Part shown: positions 1-7,425 of the stretch, piece after piece
Layout: each line of letters opens with the position of its first letter
How positions within the stretch are numbered: the first letter of the stretch is position 1
From: Vitrella brassicaformis CCMP3155
Lineage: Eukaryota > Protista > Chromerida
Assembly (NCBI GenBank): GCA_001179505.1
Contig: CDMY01000307.1
Span: forward strand, 1 to 64,000
DNA: 64,000 bases
Direction: 5' to 3'
Notes under the pieces: generated by a model
The model's database searches: none
Seen by the model: the letters and a program-made list of their open reading frames with translations, nothing else
What the model was told of the DNA's origin: nothing
Translations under genes and position numbers: made by a program

Positions 1-17
1 CGCTGTGTGTGTTGCAG

Positions 18-713
18 GTACGGTCATCGTGCGGGCGACAGCAGCAAGCGGCCCGAGCTGGCCTGGGTCTATGTCGGCAGCCACAATCTCAGCAAAGTGA
101 GTGAGCCGACAAACAGTGACACATCTGTGGTTCCTCTCTCACCATCCTCGTGTGTGTTGTGTGCCACACATATGCAGGCGGCGTGGGGCGAGCTGCAGGA
201 AAACGACTCGAAGCTGTCCATCCGGTCATATGAGCTGGGCATCCTCATCTCACCACACACACTCCGCGGCCGCACCCCGCCCCCACCACACACCACCCCC
301 CACACACAGCTGGCCGGCTCATCGTCATCCAGCAGCAGCAGCGGTGCCGCCACACAGATGCGGTCATTCATGTGGCGCAAACGCGATGACACAGGTCGGA
401 CGACACAGACAGACAGGACACATGCAGCCCATATCCACGCGTCTTGTGTGGGTGATGGGCTGTGTGCACTGCAGGGTCCTCTCCCCTGCCCCGCCTCTAC
501 GCGGCCACTTCTCGGTGCCCGAGCGGTCCACCTGATGTGCCGCTGATCGGTGTGCCTCTGCCCTATCCCCTGCCGCCGGTGCCCTACAGCAATCGTGACG
601 TGGTGTGGACGACAGACGGCATTCACGCTGGGCCGGACAGGCTTGGCAAGGAGGCAGGTGGTGACGGCGCGAGCAAGACTGTTCAGAGCAGTTCCTCGCG
701 GGCTGACTTCTGA
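18..713 (+). CDS. TDP1: Tyrosyl-DNA phosphodiesterase 1, 3' exons (gene starts before window)
   Basis: Spliced exons (18-96, 178-~394, ~475-713) give WVYVGSHNLSK|AAWGELQENDSKLSIRSYELGILISP...PLPYPLPPVPYSNRDVVWT, matching the TDP1 C-terminus (SxNLSKAAWG, IRSYELG, PYxLPPxxY..D..W). Confidence 0.9.
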
Positions 714-989
714 TGTGGTGTGAGTGGGAAGTCGGAGGTGTAGTCTGTGGATCGGTGTACATGCACTACACGATAGACGTCTCATCGATGCGTTGCGCAT
801 CGACTGGACCTCATACTGCACGCAAAGATACTGCTCGAATGATGTCAACAAACACGAAGGCGTGCACGATTGACAGAGATACCCAAGACTCATACACCTC
901 AGGATATGGGTGCCGCCCCACGCGGAATGGAAAGAATCCTGGTCGGCGATCTTAGCTCGCATGAGACCTTCCCGCGATAGATCAGCAGC

Positions 990-3612
990 GCCATGAACGG
1001 GATGAGGAAGCGGCAGAAAGGCCCGGTTGCGGCCTCAGCAGCTGCCTCCAGCGCTCCTGCCTCGGCCAATCAGCTGCCCCGTTTGTTCGACCTGCCCCAG
1101 TGCGTCGAGCGAGTCGTCTTGTTCCCTCTTTGTGGCGCTGACGGCCTCGCTCTCTTTCGGCACACATGCCCCCTCGGCGGCCAGCGTGTGTCGGAGGACT
1201 ACATCAAATCGCAAATCGACCGCCTGATGGTCACCAAGGCCATCAACAACATCGTCAGCTATCGGGTGCCGCGGCGGGTGCGGAGGGACCAGCTGCGGCC
1301 GATGGACTTCCTGCTGCGGCTGCTGGTACACACATGGACGCACTCCGACTCTCATTCCATCTCTTGCGTCTATCGCTCCTTGGCGTCTGTGTGTGTCGGC
1401 AGTATATCATCGAGAGGAGCGGCGAGTGGGCAGCGATGGTGCCAATAGTGAGGGTGGCGAAGCATCTGGGGCGGGTGGAGCGGCTGCCGATAGAGCTTAG
1501 CAGTGCTGATGTGGAGGCGGTGGGCAGCCGGGCGGTGTTTGAGGGGCGGTGTGAGGCGATGCGGCAGCTGTCACTCATCCAGCGCCATCTCATTATGAGG
1601 CTCGAGCGCGATGACAACGGTGAGGAGCGGCTGGATGGAGATCGGCTCACCGTCCGCACCCTGCAGACGCTGCCGGCCAACAGCCCCTTCCGCGATAGAT
1701 TCGACCCGAACGACCCCGTGTGTCAGTATGACGGTAAGGGCGGGAGGGATAGATGTGGAGAGACCTATGGGTGCCTGTGTGTATATGTGTGTTTGTAGAT
1801 GCCGACTATGCTTCAGTTCGCGACGCTGTGTTGTATGAGTGAGGAAAATGAGTAGAATGACACAAACGAACTCACATAAACAGATTGGCTGCGCCGCTGT
1901 GCCATGGTGTGTCTGACCAGGATGCGCTCGGGAGCGTCGCAGGTCGCGTTCCAGTATGTCCAGCGGCCCAACAATGCCACACGGTTCAGCCGACTCGTCA
2001 GTCACACACCCACACACACACACGATTGCCTCACCAGCTGTCCCACTCACTGATTTTTACCTCCCGTTCTCTTCAGCGGTACCTCGCCACTCAGCAGCCG
2101 CCCGTGTGAGACTGCCGCACCATCAGCACACGCCACTGGAGGGTGGGAGGAGGAATCCGCGAGCGCGTGATAGTGTTGCGTGGAGACCAGCAGGGTGACA
2201 CATTCGAGGCCCACATCACCATCGACAGCTACCCCACCATTGCCCGCACCCGGCTCTGGACGACGGAGCCTCCGGTGTCGGGCAGGATGGGAGCCGCCAG
2301 GTTCCCCGAGACAGTGAGGGTGGCGAGGCAGGTCATGGGGGACGACGCAGAGGTGGCGTTCGGCAACCCGCTAGCCGTAGCCGTACACTAATTCATTGAG
2401 CTCTCAACTCTCTCGTGTACAGAGAGGCTTCAGGTCTGCCTGTCTGTCTGTCTGGCCATCGCCACAGTAGCAGATGGCAGGCAGGCAGGCAGGTGTGTTC
2501 GAGAGACAGACAGATAAGTTGACGGATGCATTGTGTGTGGTGTGGCTGCCTGCACGGGGTGGGGAGGGGTACTTAGTTGAATGGATTGACAGACTGCCTT
2601 CCTGCCTGTGTGCCTGTGTGTGTGTGTGTGTGAGGCGGGTTTTTTCAATGGGGAGATGCAGCACGTGGGAATCCTCCTTCTCCACACGCAGATACATTCA
2701 CGAACACCAAAGACGCCTTGTCAGCCACCATCTACCATTCAAGTGCAGCACTGCATCTTCTGATATGGTACACACAAGCGAGAGCGACATTGCCAGTGTC
2801 CTCACTGCATCATCGATAGATTGACACATTGAACAAAACCACCCCCGCCCCGCCATGCTAGGCTCTTCACGAGTGTGTGACGTGCATTCGACTCTGCTCG
2901 ACCACTTGCAGCAAATCACCCAGACGCACGGGCTCCGCACACGCACCAACCTGCACACACACATGACCCATGTCAGGCCTCTCTCTGTGTCTGCGTACCA
3001 TCCTGACTGTCATGGCTCCCGCGGCGCAGCCGAGCTTCAAGCCGAGCTCCACAGAGCGGCCCCACACCCAGCCAAACAGAAAGCCCGCATCGAAGGCATC
3101 GCCCGCACCGGTGGCGTCCACAATCGCCTCACTCGGTAAGGACACAGCCGGGCACTGATACACACGATATGGCAAAGAACTGCACAGACAGACAGGCAGC
3201 ATAAAAGGGGAGACAGAGAGTGGCGGGGTGTGTGTGTGGATGTGTGTGCATCATCTTACCTGTCGTGTGTGTCTGGGTGTGTCTTTCGCTGTGCTGCGAT
3301 AGCGCCGCGGTCGCCCTGCTTCATGACCACCAGGGGGACGCGGCGCACGAGCCAATCGAGGGCGGCCATGCGGTCAGACACATCTGCACGCACTCATGGT
3401 GTGGCTGAGTGGTGGGTGGGATGTTGTTGTGTGTTGACTGACGGGCGTACTTGCGATGCGCGTGGCCTCGGTCTCGTTGGGGAGGAAGCAGTCGATCAGC
3501 GGCAGGACGTCATCCAGGCCGTCGAACCGATCTTAGCACACACACACACGCGCATCCATCTCTGTGTGTGTGCTCGTGTGTGTGTTGGTGTCTAGCTAAA
3601 GGCGCACCCACC
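990..3612. repeat. Direct segmental duplication, copy A (family X gene plus PfkB 3' exons); partner ~60420-62991
   Basis: Long near-identical stretches, e.g. 3075-3160 vs 62447-62532. Similarity stops at CTAAAGGCGCACCCACC (3612 / 62991). Confidence 0.9.
993..2391 (+). pseudogene. Lineage-specific family X, copy 1; in-frame TGA at a conserved Trp
   Basis: Five exons with consistent phases: MRKRQKGPVAAS...LFRHTCPLG...YIIERSGEW...RVIVLRGDQ...LWTTEPPVSGRMGAARFPETVRVARQVMG. QQPPV-TGA at 2107-2109 aligns with QQPPVW in the copies at 47 kb and 61 kb. Confidence 0.75.
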
Positions 3613-5933
3613 GTGGGGGTCGAATGCGGTGTCCATGCTGGTCGTCATCCCAAGAGCCTTCACCTGAGCTGCATAACATGACATAGCACAGCACAGCACA
3701 GCACAGAGATACACCCACCCACACACCGACACATGTGCAATTGACAGACTAACGTACCCAGGATGGTGGGCAGCTGTGGGCGTAGTGCGTGTAGGTTGTA
3801 GACGCCCGCCAGGTGCAGGTGCCCCACCCGGCCGCCGCTCACCAAGGACACCATGTCGACGTCACTCACATCCCACGCACCTGTCGCACCGTAGTCTGTC
3901 ACAAACCTGTTGGACACAGACACACACACACATGTGTGTTGGGGTGTGTGTGTGTGCGTGCGGCTTACGCGCGATCGCCGTCGGCTGCGAGGCAGAGGCA
4001 GACTCCGGTGCTCTTCTTCTTGTCGGTGGGGCCGCACACCTCCACATTCACCTGGGCGCACTTGTCGCGCAGAATCCGGGCGAACGCATCCTCACCAAAC
4101 GCACCCTGAACACATGCACACACATGGACGGATGGATGGGTGGGTGAGGATATGGACGCGCTTGTTGTGAGTCTGTGTCCCGTACCTGCAGGAGGACCGT
4201 GTGTGCATCACACCATTTGGGCAGCTCGTCCGCTGAAGGGAAAGGCGAGTCGGCCTGCACACACGCCGAGACGAACACGTGCGGGCAGTAAGAGACATGA
4301 ACGTGTATGGGTGTCCACGACTCGTACCGAGCGTATTTGCCCGAGTGGGTCGTTGTCGATGGCCGACGGCCGCGACGACTCGACGAGCGACGACAGATGC
4401 ACCGCTGTGTTGAGTGCTGAGCCTGTGTGAGGGTGTACAGCGGTCACACACATGGATACGTCTGCCTTTGTGTATGTCTGTGTGCTTCGCCCCTTACCGC
4501 CCGGGAGGATGCGCATTGGCTGTGTGCAGGCCGTGTCGGTGCCCAACACAGGTAGCCGGGGCAGCTGAGCACACCACACACACACATGGATACCGGGTGC
4601 GCCTTCGCGCCTGCCTGCCTGCCTGCCTGTCCACCTGTGCAGCCACAATGTCTGCGCACACACACAAACACACAACACACAAAGACACGTGTGCACCCCA
4701 CGCACATTGTGTATGTGCGTGTGTGTGTCTGAATGAGCATACCGACGAAGACATCTCCCAAGCACGCGATGGCGGTGCCCTTGCCGACGGTGCCGTTGGT
4801 CTCATCTCGCGAGTGGCGGCCCTCCGACTTGCGGCGAGACGACAGATTCAGACTGCTCAGCTGACATGTACACACACACACATACAGAGAGAGAGAGAGA
4901 GCCCATTCACTTCTCGTGTCTGTCTGTCTGTCTGTCTGTCTGTGTGTCTAGGTATACGCACCATCTGAGAGCATCTGGAGAGCAGGGCTTCGAGCTTGCG
5001 CGCCGTGGGCAGCTCCGAAGGCACCACGCCCATCAGATGACGCACCTGCATCATCCACCCGTTCGCCCAGCCACTCATTGATGCGCTGAGGGATGGATGG
5101 AAACACCCGTTTGTGTGCAGACCAAGCAGCGTACCACACTCAGCCATGCGGAGCAGTCCCTTTCGAGCAGGCCTTCCTCCTCCAACACACTTGAGCATAT
5201 GTCCTGTGCACTCACACAGACAGACAGGCACATAAGCAGCATGGCGATCTCTCATTCTGCCTGTGTGGCTTCCTGACTGCTCGGCTCACCACGACGGTTT
5301 CCATGCCCAGGACGGCCCCCACACAGAGAACGCCGCGCACATTCTCCGCACACACGCCACTCTGCAGCGATTGACACTCACACACACACGCATACACAGA
5401 CGAAGACTTACACACATATTCAGACACAGGCAGGCAGGCTTACCCGTTCTTCTGAAGAGCTCTCCAGCGCCGCATACCCCACGCCGATGGCAGCCTGCAA
5501 CGCGGTCTCGTCTGCGTATTTGGCCACTTGATCGAGCAGCGCTGTCAAGTCCATCTGATGCTGCTGTTGGTCCTGCTCCCGGAGCTTGTGCTCGAAGAGC
5601 GGGCTCAGTGCCGCCAGAATGACCCTGCACACAGCACACGTGCACCTGTGTTTCTTTCTGTCCGCATGAGCTCGAGTGCAGGACCGGCTGCACAGCGTAC
5701 CGATGGCAGGGCAGTGAGAGAGATCGGCACGTGATCGTGATGTCACACAAGATCCCTGTCACACACACACAGAGAGTTGTTCTCTCTCCGTGTGTCTGTC
5801 TGCCTGTCTGCCTGTCTGCCGTGTGTGTGTGTGTGTGTGTACCTTCTTGCTGGAACAGGGCCAGCTTGGCAGCTGGTGTCAGGGGCGACGGCCGCTGCGT
5901 CAGCGACCGACGGAGAGGCTGCGAGGTCGACAT
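2867..5933 (-). CDS. BTB/POZ (partial BACK) domain fused to a PfkB/ribokinase-family carbohydrate kinase
   Basis: In-phase splicing gives MSTSQ...EG|ILCDITITCRSLSLPCH|RVILAALSPLFEHKL...CAENVRGVLCVGAVLGMETVV|DICSSVLEE (BTB). Then IACLGDVFV|DIV, GGSALNTAVHL, GAFGEDAF, STGVC, LPNETEA, VMKQGDRGA and DATGAGDAFDAGF (PfkB signatures, catalytic Asp intact). Confidence 0.85.
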
Positions 5934-6050
5934 CTGACAGCGATGCTGTGACCCACCTGATGTGGACAGGGGAAGGAGATTAACGCGAGATCTTCAGCGT
6001 TTCTGGTCAACTGACGATGACCCTGCCCTGATGCGCGCAGCTCGAGAAAG

Positions 6051-7425
6051 ATGATCTTCCGCGAGCTTAGCAAGCGAGCCGCTTCCGTTGTTGGCCGCAC
6101 AGATCAGATGACAGATATGCAGCGCCTCTCCGCCGCCCCTATGGTTTCGGTGGTGTTCCTCTCCGTATTGGCGTCGTCGGCCATCGTGGCCCTGGCAGAA
6201 ACCGTCGGAAAAGATGGTCAGATGGATGGACGCACGTGGATGGGGAATGCCATGGATGGATGGATGGTGTGTGTATGCAGCTGGACAGCTCGAGATGGCG
6301 GCCACGTGCCCCGTCGATGTTGACCTCGAGCTCTGCACGGACAAGAAAGGCAGTAAGTAACCTGACTGGGAAAGTGCTGGTGCAACCTGACTGGGAGGGA
6401 TGGATGGATGGATGGCTGCAGAGTTCATGGCCGGCATTGTGTGCAGCATGGTGGACCCGGTGAGCAAACGCAGAGCAGCACAGCCCGCTACATCAGCGGA
6501 TGGATGGATGGATGGATGGATGTCTTTGCAGTGGGAGCGCCAGATCTGGAAGCAAGAGAAGGCCGAGAATCTCGAGAAGCAGGGCGACAAAGACGCTTAT
6601 TTCAAGTGGATAGAACGACGGGCCGTGATGAAGGACGGGTAAGGGGGAGTCAATCGAATTCGCTCACTCACGGCCTTGCGGCGGGCGTGTGTTGATGTGC
6701 GTGTGCTGCTGCATTCATCCAGCAAACCTGTGTTGCTCAAGGACAAGTACCCGAAGGAGGAGTGGCAGAAAATACCGGGTATCCGAATGAAGTGCATCCA
6801 CCGCACCTACCCATCCCCCACCGATTCGCCTGTATGTGTGTATGCAGGCCCTTTTGACTTTTCCGCAGAAGGCAAGCCGAAGAAAAGCTGCTGGTAAGCG
6901 CACTACGCCGCTCAACTCGGACATTGATATGTGCGTGTGTGTGTGTGTGTGCGCGCGTGTAGGTGCAAGGAGAAGAAAATCGGAGACAAGAAAGAGACAG
7001 TTTGCGAGGTCTGGCGCATCCCTCCAGATCTGTCGCCTGCATGGGCCACACACACGACGCAGAGAACCACACGCATACAGAGAGATGTGTGTATGCGTGT
7101 GTGCAGCCGGAGGGAGCCGTAGATCAAGCTGGGTCATTCGTGCAGACCGGTAGGCAGGCGACTGTATGTATTACAGTGCAGGTGAGTCAATGGATGGGTG
7201 GATGGATTGGTGGACAGAGGAATCAGAGGTGGAGCAGTCCATCGTGCGGCAGCGGCTTCAGGCCGAGGAGGGTAAGTGAGCGTGTGTAGATGATCTGTTC
7301 ATGTGTGTGTGTGTGTGTGTGTGCCGTCCAGAGGCCAACAAGCCCGCGGACACCAAGCACACCGGCAAGCCGACCAAGACCACCAAGACGAACAAGCAGA
7401 GCACCACGCTCGAGGGGGAGCTGTA
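6051..7425 (+). CDS. Hypothetical multi-exon protein with N-terminal signal/TM segment, divergent from BTB-PfkB
   Basis: In-phase exons: MVSVVFLSVLASSAIVALAE|AGQLEMAATCPVDVDLELC|KFMAGIVCSMVDP|WERQIWKQEKAE...|...KQSTTLEGEL*. No family recognised; start codon uncertain. Confidence 0.65.

Follow-up and report, generated by a model that had tools for sequence, protein, structure and literature searches.

Background

Two groups of described proteins come closest to the gene reported here. The BTB-Kelch and BTB-MATH adaptors of CUL3 (KLHL3, KLHL11, SPOP and the poxvirus kelch-like proteins) combine an N-terminal BTB domain of the PF00651 type with a different C-terminal domain, and the usual fusion partners of BTB domains are binding modules, not metabolic enzymes. 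The kinases of the PfkB/ribokinase family, such as E. coli YdjH (3h49), ribokinase and the bacterial proteins 4e3a and 3ubo, are stand-alone enzymes of about 300–430 residues that carry no BTB domain. In this work, a minus-strand gene that joins a BTB/POZ domain to a PfkB kinase domain in one transcript was analysed. It lies in a stretch of 64,000 nucleotides (nt) of Vitrella brassicaformis CCMP3155 (contig CDMY01000307.1, positions 1 to 64,000 of the forward strand), which is called the window throughout. Vitrella is free-living and photosynthetic and is related to the Apicomplexa, a group with a medically important BTB protein, K13.

The predicted product resembles each of these groups in part. 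As in the BTB-Kelch and BTB-MATH proteins, the BTB domain stands at the N-terminus and is followed by a different domain, but in Vitrella this C-terminal partner is an enzyme in place of the Kelch or MATH binding domain; in addition, the last helices of the Vitrella BTB are separated from the Y column by a long insertion. With the PfkB/ribokinase enzymes, including the database proteins P0009 and the P0012 group that are described below, the similarity is colinear over the full length of the kinase, at 31–35% identity and with the same motifs. Fusions of PfkB to a second domain are also found in a PfkB+SIS protein (P0114), in a tandem PfkB protein (P0024) and in the NCBIfam kinase/aldolase models NF047869 and NF041633. 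However, the partner in those fusions serves the same pathway, as another metabolic enzyme or as a sugar-binding domain, whereas in Vitrella it is a protein-protein interaction domain.

Gene structure and transcripts

Reading of the minus strand from 6500 to 2500, with translation in three frames, gave a sequence model of 18 exons between 5933 and 2867 (Table 1). These form a single frame of 1731 nt and 576 residues without internal stop, beginning with an ATG at 5933 and ending with a TGA at 2869–2867, and all the introns are of the GT-AG type with lengths of 48–101 nt. No ATG was seen by eye in the 5' untranslated region (UTR) between 6063 and 5934, and an in-frame stop is present there at 5996–5994.

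Eight public runs were found to contain the stretch. Three of them hold 87–96% of the sampled words and are DNA-like, and the other five hold 34–41%, approximately the value expected for exons alone. Four runs were mapped to positions 2300–6500, as assembled contigs and not as raw reads. Record 2 of run X1 (study P1), of 2068 nt, spans 6037 to 2682 and is colinear with the window at 6037–5852, 5623–5444, 4860–4743, 4104–3967, 3904–3758, 3383–3260 and 3179–2682. Records 21 and 20 of run X8 (study P4), of 1440 and 703 nt, cover 6063 to at least 3758 and 3383 to 2646, respectively. The DNA-like run X3 retains the introns. The spacing within the contigs equals the sums of the modelled exons: 65 nt between exons 1 and 3, 225 nt (exons 4, 5 and 6 together) between exons 3 and 7, 249 nt (exons 8–11 plus 1 nt) between exons 7 and 12, and 138 nt between exons 13 and 16. 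Since this agreement was found in two studies, the transcripts join the BTB exons to the PfkB exons. The BTB exons are spliced straight to those of the kinase over the 101-nt intron 4961–4861, which is GT-AG and in phase 0; exon 6 ends at 4962 and exon 7 starts at 4860. Moreover, the first methionine beyond this junction is residue 246, past the GDVFVD motif at residue 219, and therefore a complete kinase domain is not translatable without the BTB part. All these results confirm that one gene and one spliced mRNA carry both the BTB and the PfkB domains.

An earlier note on this DNA, made from the letters and their open reading frames, had proposed that the exon phases join the two domains without a stop and had named RNA across 5933 to 2867 as the check. 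The spliced contigs of the two studies match the model and cross the junction from BTB to PfkB, and the four strings that the note had quoted are all present in the spliced product: GILCDITITCRSLSLPCHRVILAALSPLFEHKL at residue 31, ENVRGVLCVGAVLGMETVVDICSSVL at residue 115, GGSALNTA at residue 251 and DATGAGDAF at residue 510.

The last intron, which is in frame and without stop, was present in two forms. Record 2 of X1 is colinear over 2682–3179 and so retains it, and record 20 of X8 skips 2949–2996, the intron being removed. Its retention would add 16 residues within the conserved C-terminal kinase strand, between VRM and VGAC, and the homologues agree with the form lacking it. An alternative exon 6 (5085–5046, RINEWLGERVDDAG) was also considered and rejected: it puts exon 7 out of frame, and the spacing of 225 nt in the RNA is that of the modelled exons 4–6.

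The introns of the gene consist largely of (CA)n/(TG)n and (CAGA)n tracts. Microsatellites of the GCCT/CAGG and CCAT types are found in introns and flanks at 2434–2454, 4609–4629 and 6398–6415, and in the read layout unrelated contigs pile up on them by the hundred, to depths of thousands, and produce many false joints.

The BTB/POZ domain

A reference set was prepared from intronless BTB genes of giant-virus and poxvirus contigs, which were fished with DNA patterns for the BTB helix motif. The resulting alignment (A2) holds 19 BTB segments, pairwise less than 60% identical, all of which pass Pfam PF00651. The joined Vitrella protein was scored in local scripts, Pfam being run on the single exons only. 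With the hidden Markov model (HMM) of A2, hmmsearch gave 28.5 bits (E 7e-11) over residues 23–76, with an envelope of residues 18–143. As controls, 5000 shuffles of the N-terminal 190 residues reached at most 4.9 bits, and 266 unrelated proteins at most 3.4 bits. The hhalign comparison of the BTB profile covered residues 22–138 over 102 columns, with a probability of 96.4% and E 1.2e-9. Both hmmalign and MAFFT --add placed the whole BTB region colinearly, with the conserved Tyr and the last, Cys-containing helix among the aligned parts.

The core positions tested were the first-strand Asp, the H-x-x-L-A-A-x-S-x-x-F helix, the Tyr, and the Cys-bearing hydrophobic helix at the C-terminal end. 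The Vitrella protein matches the alignment at its conserved D, H, L, S, F, Y and C positions, and the stretches CDITI, CHRVILAALSPLF, GVGY and VLGMETVVDIC fall on columns of A2 that are invariant or consensus. The single BTB exons gave no BTB match in Pfam, NCBIfam or PDB, an unfair test for a domain that is cut into five small exons by introns that change the reading frame. Likewise, a search of the ESM Atlas with exon 3 gave no usable match, a word-index protein search with the frame containing exon 3 gave 12 candidates of which none scored, and a locus search with the first BTB alignment returned the same viruses again and nothing else. From the profile comparisons we conclude that residues 22–138, as the earlier note had supposed for the N-terminal part, correspond to a divergent but genuine BTB/POZ domain.

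The PfkB kinase domain

Exon 17 alone matched Pfam PF00294 with 42.7 bits (cut-off 25.8; E 5.8e-11) at positions 242–291 of the 302 of the profile, and exon 12 matched it weakly (15.4 bits), at the proper profile position (57–102). Over its whole length, the region of residues 215–569 aligned by local blastp with residues 2–308 of the 316-residue P0009, a PfkB protein of the oomycete Aphanomyces astaci (RHY90530.1), at 35% identity and E 2e-58. The PfkB proteins of the P0012 group, which includes those of the haptophytes Prymnesium parvum and Diacronema lutheri, are approximately 31–35% identical to the Vitrella domain.

The motifs of the family were identified along the protein: GDVFVD at residue 219, with the substrate Asp; GGSALNTA, with the GG switch; DRAF at residue 350; PNETE at residue 438, the NxxE motif; and DATGAGDAF, with the GAGD anion hole and the catalytic Asp. 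In a MAFFT alignment with ten relatives the domain was complete and every catalytic motif was kept. A 33-residue insert follows the GG motif in Vitrella, and a short one precedes the GAGD motif. These data support the view of the earlier note that the PfkB part is intact: it is a complete kinase domain with all its active-site motifs.

Regarding the substrate, the closest PDB entries to exon 17 were the bacterial adenosine-kinase-like sugar kinases 4e3a and 3ubo, followed by adenosine kinases, KDG kinase, YdjH and ketohexokinase, and the best PDB matches of P0009, the nearest full-length relative, were E. coli YdjH (3h49) and ribokinases. Exon 17 matched 21 NCBIfam models, all far below their cut-offs, in a scan made on exons only. 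The relatives P0009, P0012, P0205 and P0058 were used as stand-ins, and none of them reached an NCBIfam equivalog cut-off that would have allowed a substrate to be named.

Table 1. Positions in the window of the parts of the BTB-PfkB gene and of its predicted product (aa, amino acid residues).
Feature	Position	Strand	Evidence
Exons 1–6	5933-5843, 5755-5701, 5624-5444, 5361-5290, 5203-5135, 5045-4962	-	sequence model and RNA contigs
Exons 7–12	4860-4743, 4651-4635, 4564-4498, 4422-4328, 4254-4186, 4105-3969	-	sequence model and RNA contigs
Exons 13–18	3906-3758, 3668-3612, 3531-3451, 3383-3260, 3179-2999, 2950-2867	-	sequence model and RNA contigs
5' UTR, at least this long	5934..6063	-	X8 record 21 to 6063, X1 record 2 to 6037
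3' UTR, at least this long	2646..2866	-	X8 record 20 to 2646, X1 record 2 to 2682
Last intron, 48 nt, in frame, no stop	2951..2998	-	kept in one RNA contig, spliced in another
BTB/POZ domain, aa 22–138	5189..5870 (end of exon 1, exons 2–4, start of exon 5)	-	local profile match
Post-BTB region and linker, aa 139–214	4771..5188 (end of exon 5, exon 6, start of exon 7)	-	printed sequence, hhalign
PfkB (ribokinase-family) domain, aa 215–569	2891..4770 (exons 7–18)	-	Pfam PF00294, blastp, motifs

Comparison with CUL3 adaptors

In the KLHL3-CUL3 complex, a phi-x-E motif is located in the alpha3/beta4 loop (M83-S84-E85), four residues past the end of alpha3, and this motif makes the largest contribution to the buried surface in all three known BTB-CUL3 complexes, those of SPOP, KLHL3 and KLHL11 (PMC3616122). 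The 3-box hairpin of the BACK domain also contributes to CUL3 binding, and the substitution E85A abolishes it (PMC3616122). Unlike these adaptors, the Vitrella protein has no phi-x-E motif at the aligned place, where L-R-E-Q-D-Q-Q-Q-H-Q stands against the reference F-s-s-n-F-K-E, the alignment of this loop being uncertain. The position is occupied by D-Q-Q, with neither a hydrophobic residue nor Glu, and the f-k columns of the viral consensus F-K-E are left as gaps in the HMM alignment. No similarity to the 3-box or BACK was detected either: hhalign against 20 BTB-Kelch segments, each lengthened by 75 residues, stops at residue 138. The 46 residues past the BTB core could form a helical hairpin invisible to sequence comparison, and the second half of the linker appears by eye to be Ser/Arg-rich and of low complexity.

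The earlier note had suggested that the architecture could link metabolite sensing to CUL3 ubiquitination. This part of it was not supported, as there is no aligned phi-x-E motif and the similarity to BTB-Kelch proteins ends with the BTB core; a link to CUL3 is without support at the sequence level and should be taken as speculation. A literature search for Vitrella and cullin gave nothing relevant.

Occurrence of the architecture and a truncated paralogue

A phmmer search with the C-terminal 103 residues against 1.84 billion cluster representatives gave 495 matches. Among the 150 of them that were listed, the only close one was P0001 (CEM01661.1, A0A0G4ETM2), a protein of 187 residues from Vitrella brassicaformis CCMP3155, and the PfkB carriers of at least 450 residues (P0002, P0017, P0024 and P0114) had no BTB domain. 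P0017, which has 480 residues and shares a 'VY.CPA' stretch, also had no BTB upstream on its contig (L002). Among the best 120 relatives of P0012, none had a BTB, and the Vitrella BTB-PfkB protein was itself missing despite an expected score of approximately 140 bits. In the literature no description of a BTB domain combined with PfkB or ribokinase was found, the co-mentions being coincidental. Each domain is well known, but their combination, which was unfamiliar to the author of the earlier note as well, was not found elsewhere in the protein and literature searches run.

The intact 576-residue protein was not recovered from two large protein libraries, though other Vitrella proteins and the fragment P0001 were present in them. 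This suggests that the public Vitrella annotation lacks the locus, leaves it without a gene model or annotates it wrongly. A correction would follow for the public Vitrella protein set, from which the intact gene appears to be absent and in which only the truncated paralogue is annotated.

The possibility that P0001 was the annotated version of the same gene was considered and rejected, as it matches only the 3' end. Its contig L001 (recorded as CDMY01000307.1) matches the window only over 3612..995, with 84% DNA identity. At the protein level the match of the contig is restricted to residues 421–576, and P0001 is 82% identical to residues 395–576 of the BTB-PfkB protein. It contains the C-terminal third of the PfkB domain behind an unrelated N-terminus of 32 residues, with neither a BTB nor the N-terminal half of the kinase. 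As the homology is confined to these limits, P0001 is, on sequence grounds, a truncated paralogue derived from a 2.6-kb duplication and not the same gene. This segmental duplication pairs positions 995–3612 of the window with 10180–12764 of L001, and covers exons 15–18 and the downstream gene.

In another of the matches, P0002 (KAJ9442468.1), a 599-residue 'pseudouridine kinase' of Diplonema papillatum, the C-terminal PfkB segment occurs three times as near-identical tandem copies, a triplication that looks like an artefact of assembly or of the gene model.

Possible roles of the fused protein

The protein would be made up of a short N-terminal extension, the BTB domain, a helical and low-complexity linker of approximately 75 residues, and the PfkB domain. 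Because the active site is intact, a working small-molecule kinase is predicted, which would use ATP and act on a sugar, a sugar acid or a nucleoside. The BTB domain may self-associate or bind a partner, which is, to our knowledge, the one property common to all BTB domains. In that case it would keep kinase units assembled or anchor them to another protein, and would not serve as a canonical CUL3 adaptor. On balance we incline to the reading of a PfkB kinase for which the N-terminal BTB determines the assembly, location or partner. Several points weigh against it. PfkB enzymes often dimerise unaided, which blurs what an added oligomerisation domain would bring. KCTD-type BTBs bind CUL3 in a different way, and such a mode would be compatible with the loss of phi-x-E. 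In addition, the sequences of the BTB profile were fished with the motif H[KR]x[IV]L...SxYF, which the Vitrella protein partly shares (its own being HRVILAALSPLF), and once this motif is masked the preceding stretch KLALFQQEGILCDITI scores just 4.6 bits (E 0.0017); despite this result, hhalign covers the whole BTB domain.

The protein could instead be a CUL3-RING adaptor in which the BTB binds CUL3 and the PfkB domain is the substrate-recognition or metabolite-sensing module, so that a sugar or nucleoside gates ubiquitination. An N-terminal BTB with a C-terminal partner is indeed the layout of BTB-Kelch and BTB-MATH proteins, and the PF00651 type includes known adaptors. We nevertheless hold this to be unlikely, as D-Q-Q stands in the place of phi-x-E, the main CUL3 contact of SPOP, KLHL3 and KLHL11 (PMC3616122), no 3-box/BACK similarity follows the BTB core, and a fully intact PfkB active site is more in keeping with an enzyme than with a module that only binds. 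A little less likely still is a young, lineage-specific fusion, arisen by exon shuffling or duplication and transcribed, whose BTB has no selected function or whose product is becoming a pseudogene. The absence of any orthologue of the architecture from the searches, the duplication-prone region with a 2.6-kb copy of the 3' end of the gene elsewhere at 84% identity, and a divergent BTB without a match in Pfam or PDB for any single exon would all fit such an origin; however, the 18 exons are all open with canonical splice sites, the kinase motifs are conserved, as are the core residues of the BTB, and the mRNA was found in runs of two studies. The specific proposal of a metabolite-gated ubiquitin-ligase adaptor, in which a sugar or nucleoside, when bound or turned over by the PfkB domain, would alter the targets of the BTB-bound cullin or the stability of the kinase, seems to us more doubtful again. 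Least probable by far is that the BTB and PfkB exons belong to two distinct genes, joined in the contigs by read-through or by chimeric assembly. Contigs were used instead of raw reads, and a contig across two genes does not prove a single transcript, but the spliced phase-0 junction intron was reproduced in two independent studies, no stop ends the BTB exons, and no start codon precedes the essential N-terminal PfkB motif.

If the BTB gathers kinase units, or links the kinase with a partner or a cullin, it would represent a new mode of regulation of PfkB enzymes. A metabolite-gated adaptor would connect a small-molecule pool directly with proteolysis in an organism related to the apicomplexan parasites.

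The neighbouring gene

Downstream of the BTB-PfkB gene, positions 993–2391 of the window hold a spliced gene on the plus strand that has no Pfam domain and belongs to a multi-copy family. Ten relatives were found at 63–77% identity; those labelled with an organism are all from Vitrella brassicaformis, and the rest are entries from MMETSP or ENA. All ten were paralogues, and the copy in the window itself was absent from them. A second copy of this neighbouring gene, 75% identical, is located on L001 at 1369–2374.

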